Below, piece after piece: positions 1-8,974 of a DNA stretch of 8,974 nucleotides. The position numbers and the translations under genes were made by a program. The notes under the pieces are model-generated. The model made no database searches and was not told the DNA's origin. It saw nothing but the letters and a program-made list of their open reading frames with translations. Origin of the DNA: Prasinococcaceae sp. CCMP 1430 (taxonomy: Eukaryota; Plantae; Prasinodermophyta); NCBI GenBank assembly GCA_013416795.1, contig RQSC01000006.1, positions 280,885 to 289,858 on the forward strand, given 5' to 3'. Position 1 is the stretch's first letter, and every line of letters begins with the position of its first letter.

Positions 1-474
1 GGGTCAGTGGTTGGTGGGGGGGTGGGGGAGGGGGCGCCCAGCGCGCGCGCTCTGGCGGGGGTGAGGGGGTGTTGGCCGCGCCCCGACGATGGATACGTCA
101 AAACGCATTGCGTTGCGAGCGACGGTTTTTAAAGATCGCCCGTGGGTACTGTACATGTGCCTTATATGTGCTTTATCTGAACGATGCGGCGCAGCGAGCG
201 CGGGTGGGGCAGCAGTCTGGGGCGCTGACCGGCGAGGGGCTCGGCGCCTGTCAGCTCGCCCTCTAGGCAGCTAGAGCGCGCCGCGAGGAGGTTCGACTCG
301 GCCACGCCTCAGGCTGCTACTCGGCAATGGTTCAACGTGGTTGTATGTAGCCCTCAGTGGCTGCTGTAGTGAGGCTAAGGAGACGTGCTCCTTGCTCGGT
401 CGGAGCCGCGCTCCCCCCTTGCTGGGCGCGCATGCCTTGGCCTCTTGCAAGAGGCCGGCCCTGAGTCCGCTCTA

Positions 475-1420
475 TCAGGCCGTCAAGGAGCCGATGCATA
501 CGTTCAAGAGCATGGCCGCCGTGCACGAGAAGCCCGTGAAGAACGCCACCCCGCGCGCCTCCGAGGGCCCCTCGTGATAGTAGATCTGGTGCGCGCGTCG
601 GGGCGCGCCCCGTGCTCGCGCAGTCAGCGCATGCACGAGCAAAGTGAGTGCTCGATGGCAGGCGGCGCGCGCGCGGACTTACGATCGTGTGGGCGACGCG
701 CCCGAGCGCGTAGGCTATGCATAGGAACGCATGTGCGGACGGCCGCGAAGCGAGCCCGAGGGCACCTAGCCACATCAGCGGAATCGCGAACGCGTTGTTC
801 TCCGAGTCGTTCTGCCACAGGCGAGCCAGGCGAGCCTCCTTCTCGATCGCCTCAAGTTTCTGCGGGTCCTTCTCATCGCGCGAATAGTCTGGCACGAGCG
901 CCTGCTCCCCGGACACCGGGATGACAGCGCTGCCGGCGGTCGCAACGCTCTGGTCCTCAGGCGGGCGCATGCCGGCCGAGAAGCGCTGCTGGGCTGTTGC
1001 CCCCAGCAGCCGGTCGCGACGGGGCGCGAGTTGCGGCGTCAGCGTCCGAGCGTCAGCATCACACGCCATTGCGCAGTTTTGCCGCCAGAGCGCCTTCAGC
1101 GCCAGTCGAGGGGGCCTCAGGGGGCGACATTCTGGCAAGGCACACATGACGTACGCACCTTGCTTCAGCACTATAAATGACGTTTTGAGCCAGACCACAG
1201 CGGTGGCGGCGGCGGCACACTTGAGCGCGAGCGGGTCCGCCGCGAGAGGGGCAGCGACGTGCTGCCACGCGCTCGCGACGACCACCAAGCGCCTGTGGTC
1301 GCTTGAGCGTGCCCACCCTCGCACCCCCCTGGCCGGCGGCGCCGCCAACGCCCGCGCGGGCGCCGCCGCGGCGGCAGGCGCTGCCCTCTTCGGCATGGCC
1401 ACGGCCACTGCGACGGCCAT
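475..1420 (-). CDS. MAPEG family membrane protein, microsomal glutathione S-transferase 1 / prostaglandin E synthase-like; 3 exons (1420-1159, 993-683, 585-475), ~227 aa
   Basis: The spliced product reads ...WLKTSFIVLKQ|AQQRFSAGMRPPED...EARLARLWQNDSENNAFAIPLMWLGAL...LGRVAHTI|IYYHEGPSEARGVAFFTGFSCTAAMLLNVCIGSLTA*. It has MAPEG hallmarks: K-x11-R..PED in TM1, R-x2-R-x3-ND-x-EN in TM2, GR-x2-HT-x2-Y in TM3, and R..FF.G...T..M in TM4 as in MGST1. Both introns are GT-AG and keep the frame. TGA at 477-475. The start codon is uncertain (ATG 1420 or the next in-frame ATG of MPKR). Confidence 0.88.
586..682 (-). other. Intron 2 of the MAPEG gene (97 nt, phase 0)
   Basis: Donor ATC|GTAAGT at 682 and acceptor ACCAG|ATC at 586. 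Splicing joins GRVAHTI to IYYH, restoring the conserved H-T-x-x-Y motif and TM4. Confidence 0.88.
994..1158 (-). other. Intron 1 of the MAPEG gene (165 nt, phase 1)
   Basis: Donor CAAG|GTGCGT at 1158. Acceptor AACAG|CC at 994 is the first AG after two GCTGAC branch-like motifs. Splicing gives the same K-to-R spacing in TM1 as mPGES-1. The intron has no in-frame stop, so the ORF finder reads through it. Confidence 0.72.
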
Positions 1421-1556
1421 CTCGTCGCCCGCGGAGCCCCTCGCCGCGGCGCTGCGGCGGCAGGCAGCTCTGACGCCGCGGCGTTGCTCTCCCTCTTCTG
1501 CGCCGCTGGCTGGGCAACGGGCCCGTGCACACGCACATGCGCGGACTCTGCTCACA

Positions 1557-1875: not shown

Positions 1876-4284
1876 TCACGTCGGTGGCAGGGCGGTCCAT
1901 GGAGCTGCGCGAGCGCGCCCTCGGAGCAACATCACGGCCGCGATGACGCCGAGCAGCACGACCGCGAGAGCCGCCACGCATGCGATCGCGGCGTTGACGC
2001 CATCTTCCACACCCGCCCGCAGGCGCGATACAATCGAGCCAGATGCTGCCAGCGCCTTGCTACTGTGCTTGCCGAATCGCGCGCTGTCGCGCGCCGGCGC
2101 GGACTCGCTCGGCGGCCTTGCCTTTGTGGCTTCGCAAAGGAGGCGCTCGGCCTCCGCCGCCTTGAGCGTCGCGGCCATCGCCTTGCGCTCCAACAGCACG
2201 AGCTGTTCGGCAGCAGTTTCTCCCCGCAGGGTGAGCTCAGAGATCGTTGCCTCGGCTGCATCTGCCCTGCGTGCCTGCGCCGCTGCGTCGAGTGCAGATG
2301 CAAGCGCCTGCGCGTTCGCGTGTCGCTCGGCTGCCTCGGCGGCACCCGCGCTCTGTGCAAGCGCGTTGGCGACTGCAGCACTCGCGACTGCGCGCGCTGC
2401 GAGCCGCGTGGTTGCGGCGTCGTTTGTGCCTTCTGCAGACCGACTCGCAGAATGCGTCTCACTCGCTGATGTCGTGCTTGCGTCTCTCACCTCTCTGTCG
2501 GCAGCAGCAAGGAGGGCGCGAGCAACCGCTGCGCGTGCGATTGCGCGCGCAGCAGTCCGGGCGCTGTCATCTTCGTCGCCCTCGTCGCCCTCGCCATTCG
2601 CGCGGGTGGCAATGTCTCCGACAGTGGCGACAATGACGGGAGGTGCGCAGGGCGGCTGTGTGCCCGGTGTTCCGCTAGGACTGTCCACAGGAGCCTTTGC
2701 TGCTGCTTGCTCGAGCGCGACGGGTGCTCGCGCGCTAGCAGGGCTGTACTCTCCAAGCTCTTGCAGCGCCCCGAGGGCCTGTCGCACCGCCGTGTCGATC
2801 ACGAAGAGCGTGCAGCAATCTTGATCGACGGGCGACGCAGCTCTGATGGTGGCGCAACGCTGCTGCTGCGCGTGGCTCCCGGCCAATGAATGTGGCGACT
2901 GTCGCGTATCTGCCATGCGCGCCTCTCCCGGTCGTGGCCCTGGCTCCCTCGCATCCGCGCATTCGACGCCATCGCCAGCCTCGTCCCCTGACGAGTCATC
3001 ATCGGTGCTCGTGGGCGTGGCAGCAACGACTGCTGCGGTCGCAGCGACGTCGCTTGGTCTGGGCGTTGCGACAGCGGTCATGTCGCTCGACAGCGCGCGC
3101 GGCCGCAGCGGCGCGCGCCCCGCGCCCCGAATAGCAGTCTGACTGTCGTCGTTGCCTTGATCGCACATCGTCGGCGCGCCAACCTCTGGCCGCGCTGCAC
3201 GGCAGGTCGCAGGCGTCGCATTGCCATTCGCGCTCTTGATGTCTGCTTCGCCGTTGGGCGCATCGCCCTGATAGGATGCGTTCTCGTTGCTAGTGCGCTG
3301 TTGCGGACTCGCCGCAGGGCTGCTCTGCGCGCTCCCGCTGCGGCTGCGGCTGCGGCTGCGGCTCCGCGCTCGCTCTGCGCGCTGCACGGCGCGGCGCAAG
3401 GCCATCGTTGCGTCGTCCGCGCGGCGCAGGCGCGCGCGAAGCTCCTCCTCGGCGCGAACGATCGGCTGTTCATCGGCTGTACACGCGCTCGCCGGTGGAG
3501 AGGACTGCACGCCTGCAGAGACCGCCGCCATCCGCGCGACGAGCGCGTGTGCGTCTGCCGCACGCGCGAGGCTCGCGAGCGGCGCTTGCGCTGCCTGGTC
3601 GGCGCCATCTTTGGCCGGAGACGGCGCCTGGGGCGACGAGAGGATGTCGGGCGTGCCCACTAGAGATGCGGTGGTCGGCGCCACCACCGAGGCGATGTAC
3701 CCGGGCGTTGAGTCGGGCGATGAGGGCGCATAGCCACAGACTTGCCCGCGCTGGCCACCGCGGTTCAGGATCCGACGACGGGCAAGCGGCGGGGACGACG
3801 GTGATGGGCGTGTCCCACGCAGACCGGGGCTGTTACCACCGTGGCTCGCTCGCCCGCCGAGCAGGGGCTCGCGCTCGTCCTCGTCGCATCCCGCGTCTCC
3901 ATCGATGCCGCGAGTACCTCGCGAGCGCTCGAACGCCCCGAAGAGCGCGCGCACGTCGTCCTCCTCCATCGCGCCTCCGGCGCTCCCTCCTCCCGCGCTG
4001 CCTGCGAGCGCCGTGGACGAAAAGTAGCTCTCGACGCTCGCGTAGCTCCCCGCGAGGCACAGCACGAGGTCCGCGAGCTGCGGCGGCGCCAGCGCGGCCA
4101 GCGCGCCGCTCCTGAAGACGCTCGTCGTCGGCCGAGGCATCGCGTCTAAGGCCTCAGGCTCGGGCTCGCGCGGCGCGGCGGCGGGGTCGACGACCGCCGC
4201 GTCCCCGCGGGACTCCGCGTTGGCATGACCAGCCGCGCGCGCCCCGGTCTCGTCCCGTTCGCCGGGCCGGCCGGCGGACGCCAT
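1876..4284 (-). CDS. Uncharacterised ~802 aa disordered/coiled-coil tail-anchored membrane protein; candidate KASH-like
   Basis: Open frame from CCG-ATG-G (4284, MASAGRPG) to TGA (1878-1876). The body is Ala/Ser/Pro/Asp-rich. Heptad-like segments lie at ~3370-3470 and ~2125-2290, an (RS)5 at 3337-3366, and a hydrophobic helix AAIACVAALAVVLLGVIAAVMLL at 1924-1992, followed by RGRARAAPWTALPPT*. No signal peptide is seen. In-frame introns cannot be excluded. Confidence 0.68.
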   Translation of the reverse strand: MASAGRPGERDETGARAAGHANAESRGDAAVVDPAAAPREPEPEALDAMPRPTTSVFRSGALAALAPPQLADLVLCLAGSYASVESYFSSTALAGSAGGGSAGGAMEEDDVRALFGAFERSRGTRGIDGDAGCDEDEREPLLGGRASHGGNSPGLRGTRPSPSSPPLARRRILNRGGQRGQVCGYAPSSPDSTPGYIASVVAPTTASLVGTPDILSSPQAPSPAKDGADQAAQAPLASLARAADAHALVARMAAVSAGVQSSPPASACTADEQPIVRAEEELRARLRRADDATMALRRAVQRAERARSRSRSRSRSGSAQSSPAASPQQRTSNENASYQGDAPNGEADIKSANGNATPATCRAARPEVGAPTMCDQGNDDSQTAIRGAGRAPLRPRALSSDMTAVATPRPSDVAATAAVVAATPTSTDDDSSGDEAGDGVECADAREPGPRPGEARMADTRQSPHSLAGSHAQQQRCATIRAASPVDQDCCTLFVIDTAVRQALGALQELGEYSPASARAPVALEQAAAKAPVDSPSGTPGTQPPCAPPVIVATVGDIATRANGEGDEGDEDDSARTAARAIARAAVARALLAAADREVRDASTTSASETHSASRSAEGTNDAATTRLAARAVASAAVANALAQSAGAAEAAERHANAQALASALDAAAQARRADAAEATISELTLRGETAAEQLVLLERKAMAATLKAAEAERLLCEATKARPPSESAPARDSARFGKHSSKALAASGSIVSRLRAGVEDGVNAAIACVAALAVVLLGVIAAVMLLRGRARAAPWTALPPT

Positions 4285-4439
4285 CGGCGCCGCGGCCGCG
4301 GAGACTGGACGCCGGCGGTGGCAGGGCCCGCACCTGGCTGGCGCACGCGCACGCTGCGCGCGGAGGAGTGGAGGACGCGCCCGTCGCCCCCTACTGTGGC
4401 GAGGCGCCCGCGCGCCACCGATTGCTCTCTCACACCCAC

Positions 4440-4500
4440 ACCAAAAAAAAAGGCGCGCAAAAAAATCGCGCGCACGAATTCGAAATGTGCTGCGCGCGCA
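4440..4500. promoter_or_regulatory. A-tract cluster upstream of gene B, candidate nucleosome-depleted promoter
   Basis: A9 (4443-4451) and A7 (4459-4465) separated by GGCGCGC, about 160-180 nt upstream of ATG 4284 in otherwise very GC-rich DNA. Confidence 0.3.
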
Positions 4501-4520
4501 GACACACGGTCGACGCCCTA

Positions 4521-4546
4521 ACACACACACACACACACACACACAC

Positions 4547-4583
<37 letters not shown>

Positions 4584-4718
4584 AACACACACACACACAC
4601 ACAGTCACACGCACACACACACACATACACACACAGTCACACGCACACACACACACATACACACACACAGTCACACGCACACACACACACACACAGTCAC
4701 ACACACACACACACACAG

Positions 4719-4779
<61 letters not shown>

Positions 4780-4801
4780 CACAAGCACACGCACACACAC
4801 A

Positions 4802-4837
<36 letters not shown>
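4521..4837. repeat. Compound (CA)n/(TG)n microsatellite, ~317 bp, with recurring interruptions
   Basis: Directly visible CA run interrupted by GCAAA x2, CAGTC x5, CATAC x2 and CAAGC x2. Confidence 0.98.
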
Positions 4838-4839
<2 letters not shown>

Positions 4840-5108
4840 CACGGATGGGATGGGCGGAGTTTGGGGTTGAGCGTCTTTTACTGTACAGTAAGGTGTGGTG
4901 GAGGGTTTCCTGAGCGTGGACGACTTCGAATACGACGGGACCCATCCGGACGGCACTCGCGACGAGGAGCGCGACGCGGCCGGCTTGTGCGAGGACGAGG
5001 GCAGCGATGTTGTGTACGCTGGATTCAATGGCGTCGGCGGGGGGTCGCTGCTCAGTCCTGAGGAGGGTTTCTTTAGCAGCATTCTCGCCGCGCCGCGCAC
5101 TGTGCGTG

Positions 5109-5352: not shown

Positions 5353-6687
5353 CTACGCCGCGGGGTCGAAGCCGCGGCACTGGGACTTGTGCTGCGGCCA
5401 GTGCGCCGCCTGGCACTCCCTGGAGCAGTAGAAGGCCTCGCCGCAGAAGCCGCAGCACCTGAGCCTGTCGACGGCGGCGGCCGACGGCGTCGCGTCGCAC
5501 GCGTCGCACTGGCGGGTCAGGCGCAGCACGTCGAGCGTGCGCCGGGCGGCGCAGCTCCCGGTCTCCTCCCTCAACGTCCGCTTGATCGCCTCGGAAGCGG
5601 CGGCGCTCACGGCGCCGGCGGCGGCCTCGCCCTGCATCTTGGCGAGCCTCGCCTGGAAGAGCGCCGTGTTTGCCGCGTCGTCGTCCTGTGCGGCCGCCTC
5701 GGCGGCCTGGCGCATCCAGTCGAGGCGCTCGGCATCGCTCAGCACGCCCTCCATCTGCGACAAGTAGTACATGGCGACGTAGTCCCCATGCTCGAAGACC
5801 GCTCGGCGGGCCCACGCCTCTGCCGCGCGGCCATCCCTGGCGACGCCCTCGCCGTTGAACAACCGCGCGGCGAGGACGCGCTGCGCCGCCGCGTCGCCCT
5901 GCTCTGCGGCCCGCGAATACCACGTTGCCGCCTCCTCGGCGCTCCGGTGGACTCCCCTGCCCTCGTCGTGGCACTGCCCGAGGATCCGCTGCGCCACCGA
6001 GTGTCCTTGCTCGGCCGCCAGGCGGTACCACCTCGCGGCCGCCTCGTGGTTTCGATCCACGCCCTGGCCCATCGAGCAGAAGAGCCCCAGCGCGTGCTGC
6101 GCGCGCGCGAGGCCCCGCTCGGCCGCGCGCCGGCACCACTCGGCGGCACCGCGATCGTCGCCCTGCTGCGACAGCTCTGCGGCGAAGTGGCACTGCGCCT
6201 CTGCATGCCCGGCCTCGGCCGCGCGTCGCATCCACGCGACGCGGGCGGCCTCGTGGCCGAGCTCTCGAAACGCCTTCGATCGCCGCCACATCGTCTCGGC
6301 GTCGGGGTTCCCTTGCGCCGCGGCCAGCGCGGCGCGCTGGCGAGCGGCGCGGGCACTGGGCGATTGGAGCGGCGTCCACGCGAGCACTTCGACGCGCGAG
6401 GCGCCGCTGGTGCTGGTGGAGGCGTCGCCGCCGCTGCTGCGGCGCTCGTCGCCCCGCTCAATCGCTTCGCCGCAGCAGCGCCGCTCCTCCCGCTGCGGCC
6501 CTGGCATGGCGTCCGGCAGCGCGGCCCCCGCGTAGCACGTCGGGCGCAATCGCGCCTCGGGCTGCGCCCGCTGCCTCGCTCCGCTCAGTCGCTTCCCAGC
6601 CTGTCCGGACACGGCTCCGAGCGCGCCCGGGCGCATGGGCTCCGCGCGCGGACCCGCAGCTGCTGCCGCCGCTATCGTCCCCGGCAT
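5353..6687 (-). CDS. Sel1-like (SLR) repeat protein with C-terminal MYND-type zinc finger
   Basis: About 5-6 Sel1 repeats at ~6309-5695, e.g. AQHALGLFCSMGQGVDRNHEAAARWYRLAAEQG and AQRILGQCHDEGRGVHRSAEEAATWYSRAAEQG. MYND motif CDAC...CGFC...YCSRECQAAHWPQHKSQC at 5508-5377. TAG at 5355-5353. Start uncertain: ATG at 6873, 6687, 6636 or 6507 (GCC-ATG). Confidence 0.9.
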   Translation of the reverse strand: MPGTIAAAAAAGPRAEPMRPGALGAVSGQAGKRLSGARQRAQPEARLRPTCYAGAALPDAMPGPQREERRCCGEAIERGDERRSSGGDASTSTSGASRVEVLAWTPLQSPSARAARQRAALAAAQGNPDAETMWRRSKAFRELGHEAARVAWMRRAAEAGHAEAQCHFAAELSQQGDDRGAAEWCRRAAERGLARAQHALGLFCSMGQGVDRNHEAAARWYRLAAEQGHSVAQRILGQCHDEGRGVHRSAEEAATWYSRAAEQGDAAAQRVLAARLFNGEGVARDGRAAEAWARRAVFEHGDYVAMYYLSQMEGVLSDAERLDWMRQAAEAAAQDDDAANTALFQARLAKMQGEAAAGAVSAAASEAIKRTLREETGSCAARRTLDVLRLTRQCDACDATPSAAAVDRLRCCGFCGEAFYCSRECQAAHWPQHKSQCRGFDPAA

Positions 6688-6965
6688 TGCCACCCACGTA
6701 GGCCTCGGCGTTGCGGATGTGCCAGCCCACCCATGCGCCGCGATCGACGTAGCAGGGCGAGCGCACGCCCGAGGGGGGGCACTCTTCGCGCGACGACTCG
6801 TCGGCGANAAGTACACGCGATCGGCGTTGCGTATGCTTTGATATGTGCACCCCACGGTGCTGTACAAATACATTCAATTTGATGGGCTCCGCGCCCGTTT
6901 TCGTAACGGCTTGTGGGGGAACGGAGCGGCGCGCCCTCGGCCTCGGGCGGCGGGTGTCTGGCGGC

Positions 6966-7249: not shown

Positions 7250-8974
7250 CTACGGGACAGGCACCGGATCGGGCACCGCGATGGGCGCCTTGGTGGGCGC
7301 GTCGGGGGGGAGGCACCCCACCGGCACGAGCTCGGCCCACAGGCCCACGACTCTCTCTTGGCCCTCGGGAGTCCAGAAGTGCTTGGTGTCCAGCTCGAAG
7401 GTCTCGATGTCCAGCGTCATCTCCCCCACGAGCGGGAAGACCCTGAAGAAGGGCTTGATCGCGTAGTCGATGCGGCCTGCGGCGCCGGGCAGGCTGATGA
7501 TCGTCGGAGTCTTGTTGATGATGGAGACCTTGTCGGGGCACAGCTTGACGCAGCCCAACCCCCCCTCCGGGCAGACCTCCTCCGGAGGGGTGAGGCCGGC
7601 GAGCTCGCCCGCTGGGGGCAGGCCGTCCCGGAGGAAGTCGGGCAGAGCGTAGCACGTGCCGTTGTTGGGCCACTGGTCCGGATCGTTGGTGGTGGACAGC
7701 AGCTTGATCGGCACGTCGACCGTCACAGTCCCGTCGGGCACGCCAAACGGCGGGGGGGTTATGATGACGTCGAAGGAGGCGATCACCGTGTACAGGTAGG
7801 GGGGGTCAACCGGGGTGTTGTCGTACGAGAAGCTGCTGGCGAGCTGGAACTTCGTGCGCGGCTTGTCGCAGTCGGGGGTGCACTGCACGGGCGCCTTGGT
7901 GGGCCCGCCTTGGAGGGGACCCGTGCAGAAGGAGCTGCGCTCGTCGAAGGGGATGCCAAACTCCGTCGTGGGCGTGCCCCAGAAGACGCCGTTGGGGCGC
8001 TCGAGGCTCTCGCAGTCCTTCAGCTCGGGCAGCGACGCGTTGGGAGGGGGCCTGTGCTGCACCGTCGGGCGCGAGAACTTGCCGGTCGCGTCGTCGATGA
8101 GAAAGGCTCCAAAGTACGTGGCTTCCGGCTCGAAGCAGGGGTTGAACGCCGGCGACTTCGTGGGCACGGCGGGCGACTTGGTGGGCGCCGCGGTCGGGGC
8201 GGCCGTGGGGTTGGCGGTCGGGCGGCGCGTGGGGGCCTCCGTCGGCGGGGCGGGGCGCGTGGGCGCGGCCGGCAGCGGCTCGCGGGTGGGCGCCACGGGC
8301 CCCACCGGCACGATGGGCGCGTCGGTGGGCGGCTCCACGGGCGCCGGGGTAGGGGGCGGGCGCTCGGTGGGGCTGGGCGTCGGGCTGGTGGTGGGCGAGG
8401 CGGTGGGCCTGCGCGTGGGGTTGACGGTCGGGTAGGCGGTCGGGTTGGCGGTTGGGTTGTGCGTGGGCGAGTCGGTGGGCGCCTTGGTGGGGCGCGGGCA
8501 GGCGCCGCACACCTGGCAGGCGCCGGGGCAGCAGTCGCCGCTCAGGTCGCACTGCGAACGGGGTTTGGGGGTGTCGGGTGGACGTGTGTGCAGAGCGCGG
8601 CGAGGTCAGTGCTCGGGTCGACCGCGGCGGTGTGGGCGACGCGCGCTCGCTCAAACAGCCCGCTGCGCGCCGCACCTGCTCGTCGCAGTAGCAGCCCGAG
8701 GGGAGCTGCTTGCCGCAGGTGCGCAGCGTGCAGCGCTCGTTGGAGACGGGCGACTTGGTGGGGCTCTTGGTGGGAGGCTCGAGCGGCGCGTAGGTGGGCT
8801 TGACTGGCACCGCTGGCGCCTCGGTAGGCCCCTTGCCGGGCACTACGGGGGCATCGGTCACCGGCCTGTAGGTACGCGCGGGCGCCTCGGTGGGGTAGGG
8901 GCGCGTCATGACGGCTCCTGCGTCGCGCGCGGCGAGGAGCGCCGCGACGGCCGCCACGACGGCCGCCGCGACCG
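7250..8974 (-). CDS. Secreted mucin/extensin-like Pro-Thr-rich protein with a somatomedin-B-like Cys module and a C-terminal choice-of-anchor K / THxN-like beta domain; 5' end outside the window; exons >8974-8676 and 8551-7250
   Basis: The frame is open to the window edge and reads VAAAVVAAVAALLAARDAGA|V, like a signal peptide h-region and cleavage site. PT(K/E/A/D)(A/S)P repeats flank the spliced module CTLRTCGKQLPSGCYCDEQ|CDLSGDCCPGACQVCGAC, which has the SMB core C-x-CD-x2-C-x3-GDCC. A globular region at ~8137-7313 carries N-glycosylation sequons NAS, NGT and NKT. Strong GC3 bias. TAG at 7252-7250. Confidence 0.85.
8552..8675 (-). other. Intron of gene D (124 nt, phase 0)
   Basis: Donor CAG|GTGCGG at 8675 and acceptor TTCGCAG|TGC at 8552. 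Splicing joins two ORFs in different frames and completes the Cys module. Confidence 0.9.

Follow-up and report, generated by a model that had tools for sequence, protein, structure and literature searches.

An orphan tail-anchored protein with a candidate KASH-type C-terminus in a deep-branching green picoalga

According to reviews of the nuclear envelope in plants, SUN proteins go back to the green algae, while the known KASH families appear only from the mosses onward. This gap between the two ranges has raised the possibility of an ancestral SUN function that was independent of KASH partners. Under the DORY definition, a putative KASH domain directly follows the transmembrane domain (TMD), measures 9-40 aa and has the pattern [DTVAMPLIFY][VAPIL]PT at its end (Zhou et al., 2014; PMC4050730). 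The strict plant consensus consists of V or I followed by PT, a tail of 9-13 aa and, in SINE-type tails, an acidic patch (PMC13200780). For tail-anchored proteins in general, the ER consensus is a nonpolar or negative tail. A TMD with a GRAVY of 2.4 is regarded as "highly hydrophobic", and a strongly hydrophobic TMD can direct the protein toward the ER in spite of the charge of its tail.

The gene described here lies in a window of 8,974 nt, the whole stretch of DNA that was analysed, from a marine green picoalga with a proteome of 7,139 genes and a GC content of 70%. It is very probably a real gene that is restricted to one lineage, Prasinoderma, and encodes a mostly disordered, tail-anchored orphan protein without a signal peptide. 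As judged from features of its sequence, the protein is also a tentative candidate, somewhat short of an even chance, for a KASH-type protein that would form the cytoplasmic half of a LINC bridge. The premise of an earlier note, that no KASH protein is known from this lineage, agrees with the reviews, which report none in green algae. Its further argument, based on a complex plastid and plastid ER continuous with the outer nuclear membrane, is inapplicable to this green alga, whose plastid is primary.

Gene model and constraint among wild alleles

The coding sequence occupies positions 1876..4284 of the minus strand and consists of 802 codons and a TGA stop, uninterrupted by introns. In the ORF reading of the window the ATG is at 4284 and the TGA at 1876-1878, and this frame is open in all ten distinct alleles. 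A longer mechanical ORF of 1074 aa (5100..1876) was rejected as the gene because its first 272 codons pass through a (GT)n microsatellite and then through sequence that the relatives do not maintain in frame. The sequence upstream of 4284 contains stops and frame changes in the relatives, and the ATG at 4284 is considered the true start. A gene on the opposite strand was likewise rejected, as the frame there, which has a similar substitution ratio, contains stop codons in 8 alignment columns.

The ten distinct wild alleles that were compared are 94-99% identical, with a divergence of about 5%. The frame is under purifying selection, and its limits are exactly the ATG at 4284 and the TGA at 1876. 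All six indel blocks inside the CDS have lengths that are multiples of three, compared with one of five in the upstream 240 nt and one of nine in the downstream 240 nt. No indel falls in the final 1.1 kb of coding sequence, and out-of-frame indels start 5-7 nt past the stop. In addition, variation is in excess at third codon positions, and no frame other than that of the CDS is free of internal stops. The CDS frame holds 58 synonymous and 72 non-synonymous states, with a non-synonymous/synonymous ratio of 0.46 (binomial P = 1.4e-5). The protein is fast-evolving.

Windows of 58 aa without any amino-acid change among the alleles are confined to three blocks. The C-terminal block comprises the last 58 aa (1879..2052, minus strand), which include a juxtamembrane segment, the TMD and the tail, and is identical in all nine aligned proteins. 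Its codons carry 4 synonymous and no non-synonymous states, as opposed to 53 and 76 in the rest of the gene (Fisher P = 0.03). Few other parts of the protein are as constrained in the wild alleles as the TMD and tail, a result that counts in favor of the KASH-type reading. The N-terminal block (aa 54-118; 3931..4125, minus strand) is predicted by AlphaFold2, at low pLDDT, to form short helices at residues 60-64, 67-78, 82-96 and 108-122, and it has no match in Pfam, the PDB or the Atlas. The central block (aa 475-532; 2689..2862, minus strand) contains a predicted helix at 485-509. Its a/d hydrophobic periodicity is the highest in the protein apart from the TM region, and the lowest pN/pS of the protein, 0.18, is found there, at alignment columns 470-560. 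Elsewhere, an (RS)5 dipeptide run (aa 307-316, RSRSRSRSRS; 3337..3366, minus strand) is encoded by a hexanucleotide repeat of variable copy number. This tandem repeat, of period 6, extends over 3325-3363, and alleles show an in-frame difference of 6 nt in length there.

The body of the protein is predicted to be disordered, as the earlier note had proposed. It is of low complexity and rich in Ala, Ser, Arg, Gly and Pro (23% Ala), and the AlphaFold2 model, built on a four-sequence alignment, has a mean pLDDT of 33.5 and no globular domain. The coiled coil claimed at 2125-2290 (aa 666-720) is not confirmed, as this segment is a low-confidence predicted Ala-rich helix with a heptad a/d periodicity no higher than that of shuffled sequences. 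It is contained in a larger Ala-rich region (aa 571-721; 2122..2574, minus strand), for which AlphaFold2 predicts long helices at 571-608, 617-645, 648-686 and 689-721 with pLDDT of 30-50. The best heptad score in this region is 0.35 versus a shuffle mean of 0.43 (P = 0.85), in a crude test that ignores Ala at core positions. A motif scan of the protein found no W-acidic kinesin-binding, LIR or classical NLS motif, and no cytoskeleton- or motor-binding domain was recognisable in the Pfam scan, the sequence features or the AlphaFold2 model.

The narrow distribution of the gene is apparent from several searches. An exhaustive phmmer search of 1.84 billion representative proteins recovered only the protein's own cluster and no relative below 94% identity, and a word-based search of 5.8 billion clusters matched three clusters at 94-96% identity and nothing else. 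A scan of JGI metagenomes yielded 600 pattern matches with zero relatives among them. The proteins of the known relatives are ORF calls on metagenome scaffolds and not transcript-based models. No family was found in a Pfam scan of the protein with E up to 1, no match in a PDB sequence search with either the whole protein or the TM plus tail, and no Rfam match in the window. Queries of the ESM Atlas with the whole protein and with aa 45-130 and 560-802 gave look-alikes that scored below 0.9 throughout and are thus uninformative.

Membrane anchor, tail and the KASH patterns

The C-terminal architecture on which the earlier note based its proposal is borne out. By hydropathy, the only hydrophobic segment of the protein is a single transmembrane helix of 23 aa, AAIACVAALAVVLLGVIAAVMLL (aa 765-787; 1924..1992, minus strand), with a GRAVY of 2.93 and a Hessa-scale sum of -4.1. 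Kyte-Doolittle 19-mer windows above 1.6 are confined to aa 758-775 and beyond, the N-terminus has a charged, polar character, and the TM region is helical in the AlphaFold2 model (residues 747-792). In the ORF reading, a 15-aa exoplasmic tail, RGRARAAPWTALPPT, begins directly after the helix at aa 788 (1879..1923, minus strand) and ends in LPPT at the stop TGA. The tail has a net charge of +3, contains no Asp, Glu or Cys and carries the only Trp of the protein. Its three arginines are spaced R-G-R-A-R, so that no adjacent dibasic pair is formed. With one TMD 15 aa from its end, no N-terminal hydrophobic segment and no signal peptide, the protein has the organization of a tail-anchored protein. 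The stop and the terminal motif are kept in 10 of 10 alleles, which are themselves 94-99% identical.

The terminal LPPT (1879..1890, minus strand) is a candidate SUN-interacting motif identified by pattern match, and it conforms to both the plant pattern [DTVAMPLIFY][VAPIL]PT and the animal pattern [PATHQL]PP[QTVFILM]. All three sequence features of the DORY definition are found, since the tail adjoins the TMD, is 15 aa long and ends in LPPT. The strict consensus for SUN-interacting tails of plants is not matched, as the tail has Pro before PT, a length of 15 aa, a charge of +3 and no acidic residue.

If the protein is of the KASH type, the membrane of the ER would take up its 23-aa, very hydrophobic TMD post-translationally, and from there the protein would spread into the contiguous outer nuclear membrane. 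Retention there would depend on the 15-aa lumenal tail, whose LPPT with its free carboxylate would dock into an inner-membrane protein with a SUN domain. The result would be the cytoplasmic half of a LINC-type bridge, and the invariant cytoplasmic blocks at aa 54-118 and 475-532 may be the sites that bind the cargo tethered to the nucleus. Counted against the KASH-type reading is that the green algae Chlamydomonas (PLAZA) and Medakamo are reported to have mid-SUN proteins only. The basic tail, the Pro before PT and the lack of a recognisable domain for binding the cytoskeleton or motors also weigh against it. The supplements of the genome paper contain no mention of SUN.

Alternative readings of the C-terminus

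The alternative that survives best, while rather unlikely, is a generic ER or endomembrane tail-anchored protein without a SUN partner. LPPT would then be a chance product of a Pro/Thr/Ala/Leu-rich proteome encoded at 70% GC, and the C-terminal constraint would reflect insertion and anchoring only. Based on the amino-acid frequencies of the protein itself, the estimated rate at which a random tail ends in the plant or the animal KASH pattern is about 1.5 in 1000. Assuming that about 100-280 of the 7,139 genes encode proteins with a C-terminal TMD and a short tail, 0.15-0.4 chance matches are expected per genome, and the motif is therefore enriched evidence and not proof. It also favors a generic protein that the invariant block spans the TMD and the juxtamembrane segment and not the tail alone, and that no cytoplasmic domain of the type found in KASH partners is recognisable. 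The GRAVY of the TMD exceeds the 2.4 level and favors the ER, which is compatible with the generic and KASH-type readings alike. Against chance, LPPT fits the plant and animal patterns exactly, and in two plant proteomes most of what the rule picked out was either verified or homologous to known KASH families. In Arabidopsis, the five new hits of a looser XXPT rule comprised four candidates that were later verified and one that was rejected, so at least one match is judged false, and in maize six of the eight candidates obtained with the full rule are homologous to known KASH families. The 15-aa tail is also unchanged in every allele, although this weighs little given a divergence of about 5%.

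It is improbable that the protein is instead directed to the outer membrane of the plastid or mitochondrion, or to the peroxisome, by its three arginines on the C-terminal side of the TMD. The tail does have the positive charge expected of such proteins, at +3 with no acidic residue. With positive C-terminal elements, tail-anchored proteins are sorted to the outer membrane of mitochondria and, in plant cells, to the envelope of the chloroplast, and an ACBD5 mutant with a tail of +2.9 reached mitochondria. Organelle outer-membrane proteins combine a shorter, moderately hydrophobic TMD with either such an element or an adjacent dibasic motif, and this protein lacks both a TMD of that kind and the dibasic pair. 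At 23 aa and a GRAVY of 2.93, the TMD is longer and more hydrophobic than those of mitochondrial tail-anchored proteins, and raised hydrophobicity has overridden tail charge toward the ER. Moreover, peroxisomal proteins with hydrophobic TMDs required a far higher charge, +9 in FALDH-PO. These sorting rules derive from animals, yeast and land plants and not from this alga.

Expression of the ORF is represented by metatranscriptome contigs that match it at 2238-2524 and 3808-4082. In all, the ORF is matched by no more than three short contigs of RNA or putative RNA, none of which extends to the C-terminus, and the full-length matches are genomic assemblies. Among the runs on record, no RNA run was found that covers 1780-2140. 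A collection of 15 billion proteins contains neither the exact 802-aa product nor any of ten versions that begin at another Met and share its end. While these observations, and the derivation of the relatives' proteins from ORF calls, would be expected if a 3' intron or alternative polyadenylation changed the true C-terminus or if the ORF were not expressed as protein, this is very unlikely given that the ORF is the only open frame and is under purifying selection, that the zone with no or only in-frame indels reaches precisely to the stop, that the last 58 codons vary only synonymously and that the contigs cover two other parts of the ORF.

Comparison with known KASH and tail-anchored proteins

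A slightly more doubtful proposal, also drawn from the sequence, is that the protein may represent the first case of a KASH-type protein of the outer nuclear membrane in a green alga, in which case SUN-KASH bridging through a tail ending in Pro-Thr would already have been present in early green plants. The host lineage is reported to branch before Chlorophyta and Streptophyta diverged, and the tail would be intermediate between the animal PPPX and plant VPT types. If so, the view that SUN proteins of algae function in the absence of KASH partners would have to be revised. Verification of a KASH partner in a green picoalga that branches this deeply would help to settle the question of the ancestral SUN function, and the gene would offer a minimal, single-exon test case, 802 aa long and with three conserved blocks. 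Should the motif match by chance only, the gene is simply another orphan tail-anchored protein.

Ordinary tail-anchored proteins, whether of the cytochrome b5 type in the ER or of the mitochondrial or plastid outer membrane, have the same single C-terminal TMD, short exoplasmic tail and lack of a signal peptide, and their sorting is expected to follow from TMD hydrophobicity and tail charge. In contrast, the orphan combines an ER-type TMD, a basic tail of the organelle type and a terminal motif that obeys the KASH rule, which is an unusual mix.

The plant KASH proteins, Arabidopsis WIP1-3 and SINE1-5 and maize MLKG1/2, are likewise tail-anchored, with a short Cys-free lumenal tail that ends in xxPT and is 9-13 aa long, compared with 15 aa here. 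No sequence homology between the orphan and these families was found by Pfam scan or phmmer. The cytoplasmic parts of the plant families are themselves mutually unrelated, and several families, such as the verified SINE3/4 and MLKG, are confined to narrow clades, similar to the orphan. In every plant KASH domain examined PT is preceded by V or I, whereas the orphan has Pro. In addition, the tail of AtWIP1, PEPDTVVPT, is acidic and those of SINE proteins contain an acidic patch and an aromatic residue, while the tail of the orphan has a charge of +3.

Among animal proteins, the KASH consensus is PPPX and the tails are 8-32 aa long, the long ones containing a Cys that forms a disulfide with SUN, whereas the orphan tail has 15 aa and no Cys. 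Spectrin, CH and other nesprin-type domains are absent from the orphan in the Pfam scan. Nesprin-4 ends in LPPV, of which the orphan shares LPP, and L-P-P is reported to sit in the SUN2 pocket in PDB 6WMD. Finally, the report on Plasmodium SUN1-ALLAN (PMC12092005) describes a lineage without a recognisable KASH protein in which SUN is paired with a lineage-specific partner.

Reading frame and setting of the orphan gene

The orphan (minus strand, ATG 4284 to TGA 1876) lies within a 1074-aa mechanical ORF, an open frame on the minus strand at 5100..1876. Because the G+C content of the window is ~70%, long ORFs are expected in every frame and the ORF alone is no proof of a gene. Ten distinct alleles were compared, namely the window and nine near-identical copies of the locus from TARA/ENA marine metagenome scaffolds. 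Upstream of ATG 4284, relatives possess in-frame stops, and the same DNA is read in three different frames. All six indel blocks found within 4284..1876 have lengths divisible by three, the corresponding fractions being 1/5 in the 240 nt upstream and 1/9 in the 240 nt downstream. The final 1.1 kb of coding sequence contains zero indels, and the first out-of-frame indel occurs 5-7 nt past the stop. Variation by codon position is 33/32/56, a third-position excess (P = 0.01), and the frame holds 58 synonymous and 72 non-synonymous states (ratio 0.46, binomial P = 1.4e-5). It is also the sole frame without internal stops. Additionally, two metatranscriptome runs from seawater contain short contigs that match 2238-2524 and 3808-4082, and one run of guessed RNA type matches 3645-4146. 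Because of the in-frame indels, the substitution pattern, the single open frame and the metatranscriptome contigs, we conclude that the orphan is a genuine coding gene whose 802-aa product needs no intron, and that its reading frame is constrained all the way to TGA 1876.

Two other possibilities were rejected. The mechanical ORF as a whole is not the gene: its first 272 codons cross a microsatellite of 317 bp, with a "CVCVCV" translation, and relatives contain stops and frame changes there. The opposite-strand frame that shares wobble positions with the ORF has stop codons in eight alignment columns.

The microsatellite, an (AC)n/(GT)n repeat at 4521-4837, is located 240-550 nt upstream of the orphan ATG, and its presence is polymorphic among alleles. 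Four wild alleles (L003, L007, L008 and L010) have zero (GT)n runs of at least 6 units in 600-1644 nt upstream, L007, L008 and L010 have a spacer of only ~560 nt before the Sel1/MYND gene versus ~1070 nt in the window, and several TARA scaffolds terminate within the repeat. This upstream neighbour (5353-6873, minus strand) encodes Sel1 repeats (Pfam, E = 4.5e-22) and, at its C-terminal end, a MYND zinc finger (E = 1.4e-8), with a single N at 6808 in its ORF. The downstream neighbour (332-1555, minus strand) has a Pfam match to the MAPEG family (E = 3e-7, aa 227-292 of its mechanical ORF). Its predicted start is only ~320 nt past the orphan stop, so the orphan 3' UTR must be short. The order of these three genes is kept on metagenome scaffolds. 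A further minus-strand ORF at 7250-8512 has repeats rich in Pro and Thr, with a weak match to Pfam PT, and tandem repeats of period 12-36.

Body of the protein and search for relatives

Ala makes up 23% of the protein, in which Ser, Arg, Gly and Pro are also abundant and which includes an (RS)5 run encoded by a hexanucleotide repeat of variable copy number. AlphaFold2, run with a shallow alignment, gave a mean pLDDT of 33.5 and no globular domain, with helices predicted at aa 272-314, 571-721 and 747-792. The coiled coil claimed in the earlier note (aa 666-720) falls in an Ala-rich predicted helix. Its a/d hydrophobic periodicity was not above that of shuffles in a crude test (P = 0.85), and the coiled coil is therefore treated as unproven.

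Only three 58-aa windows are without amino-acid change among the ten alleles: aa 54-118 (3931-4125, minus strand), aa 475-532 (2689-2862, minus strand) and the last 58 residues. The first two each contain predicted amphipathic helices within disordered protein that drifts fast, had zero matches in any library searched, and are candidate partner-binding sites. The last 58 codons hold 4 synonymous and 0 non-synonymous states, the counts elsewhere being 53 and 76 (Fisher P = 0.03). The hoped-for pattern, in which anchor and tail are kept as the body drifts, is seen among ten near-identical alleles and carries modest statistical weight. In allele L002 (L002:2838-3103), the last 61 codons are identical to the window. 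Similarity in its 3' flank drops from ~95 nt past the stop, identity to the window across the first 240 nt of flank being 66%; either this allele is a structural variant with another 3' flank or the scaffold is chimeric.

No Pfam family was found in the orphan, and a word search recovered only clusters at 94-96% identity. HMMER, run exhaustively against 1.84 billion representatives, returned nothing beyond the orphan's own cluster, and JGI metagenomes, the PDB and the ESM Atlas yielded zero further relatives. A 15-billion-protein collection contained neither the exact 802-aa product nor any of ten versions that begin at another Met. Judged by these searches, the orphan appears to have no relatives beyond the ten alleles in the databases covered.

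The probable C-terminal anchor and its possible functions

The final 39 codons of the mechanical ORF encode a 23-residue hydrophobic segment, AAIACVAALAVVLLGVIAAVMLL (nt 1924-1992, minus strand), a 15-aa tail ending in LPPT, RGRARAAPWTALPPT (nt 1879-1923, minus strand), and directly thereafter the stop codon TGA (1876-1878, minus strand); the helix, tail and terminal LPPT reported earlier are all present. This segment alone exceeds a Kyte-Doolittle 19-mer mean of 1.6, and it has a GRAVY of 2.93 and a Hessa-scale plain sum of -4.1. The tail contains three Arg and zero acidic residues. The N-terminus is charged and polar, and thus without a signal peptide. The predicted architecture is that of a tail-anchored protein, and the orphan is very probably a real one.

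Under the published sequence definition, or KASH rule, a putative KASH domain directly follows the TMD, is 9-40 aa long and forms the protein C-terminus with a terminal pattern, [DTVAMPLIFY][VAPIL]PT in plants or [PATHQL]PP[QTVFILM] in animals (PMC4050730). All three criteria hold for the orphan end (LPPT, 15-aa tail), under both patterns. The track record of the rule is good. In Arabidopsis, relaxing the search to XXPT added five new models, four of them positive candidates that were verified afterwards (PMC4050730); in maize, six of the eight candidates from the full rule were homologous to known KASH families. A random tail drawn from the orphan's own composition is estimated to fit one of the two patterns ~1.5 times in 1000. 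Assuming 100-280 proteins with a C-terminal TMD and short tail in a 7,139-gene proteome, an estimated 0.15-0.4 chance matches are expected per genome. From its sequence features, the orphan might act by a KASH-type mechanism, a reading that we hold tentatively and short of even confidence.

The consensus signal that sends tail-anchored proteins to the ER combines a long, hydrophobic TMD and a tail that is either nonpolar or negative, whereas positive tails lead to the mitochondrial outer membrane, or the chloroplast envelope in plant cells (PMC8644595), which counts against the KASH reading. A TMD with a GRAVY of 2.4 has been termed "highly hydrophobic", a value well below that of the orphan, and in mammalian cells making the TMD more hydrophobic outweighed the charge of the tail and shifted sorting toward the ER (PMC5450235). 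Because the basic tail points to organelles but the GRAVY points to the ER, the predicted sorting is ambiguous, leaning ER. This leaning would also suit a plain ER or endomembrane anchor that carries the motif by chance, which seems somewhat less likely than the KASH-type mechanism. An organelle outer-membrane anchor, consistent with the tail charge but less so with the hydrophobicity, is more doubtful still. A wrong or unexpressed C-terminus is very improbable with the frame constrained to the stop, although none of the matching RNA contigs extends to the C-terminus and zero RNA runs are on record for 1780-2140.

Host, SUN partners and known KASH proteins

The earlier argument from complex plastids and plastid ER is not applicable if the host is Prasinoderma coloniale, a green alga whose plastid is primary and whose lineage is reported to branch before the Chlorophyta/Streptophyta split (PMC7455551). 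The published G+C of this alga, 69.8%, matches that of the window. In reviews, SUN proteins are recorded for Ostreococcus and Chlamydomonas, and Cter-SUN is reported without loss in the chlorophytes sampled; PLAZA gives Chlamydomonas mid-SUN only, and Medakamo has mid-SUN only. According to reviews, plant KASH families appear earliest in mosses (SINE1/2) and others later. The reviews describe zero KASH families in green algae, and their authors note that SUN could, on this distribution, have had an ancestral role independent of KASH. If the KASH reading is true, the orphan would add a new and unrelated protein to the KASH kind, in a lineage with no known member; if it is wrong, it would be an orphan tail-anchored protein.

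Overall, the KASH-type function proposed in the earlier note has partial support: the orphan agrees with the operational definition in every sequence criterion that could be tested but departs from the strict plant consensus. Specifically, in all plant KASH domains examined PT follows V or I, whereas in the orphan it follows Pro; plant KASH tails are 9-13 aa, and that of the orphan is 15 aa; and the AtWIP1 tail is acidic (PEPDTVVPT) and SINE tails have an acidic patch, in contrast to the three Arg of the orphan. Each of these differences counts against KASH. The L-P-P of the orphan is shared with the nesprin-4 ending, which occupies the SUN2 pocket.
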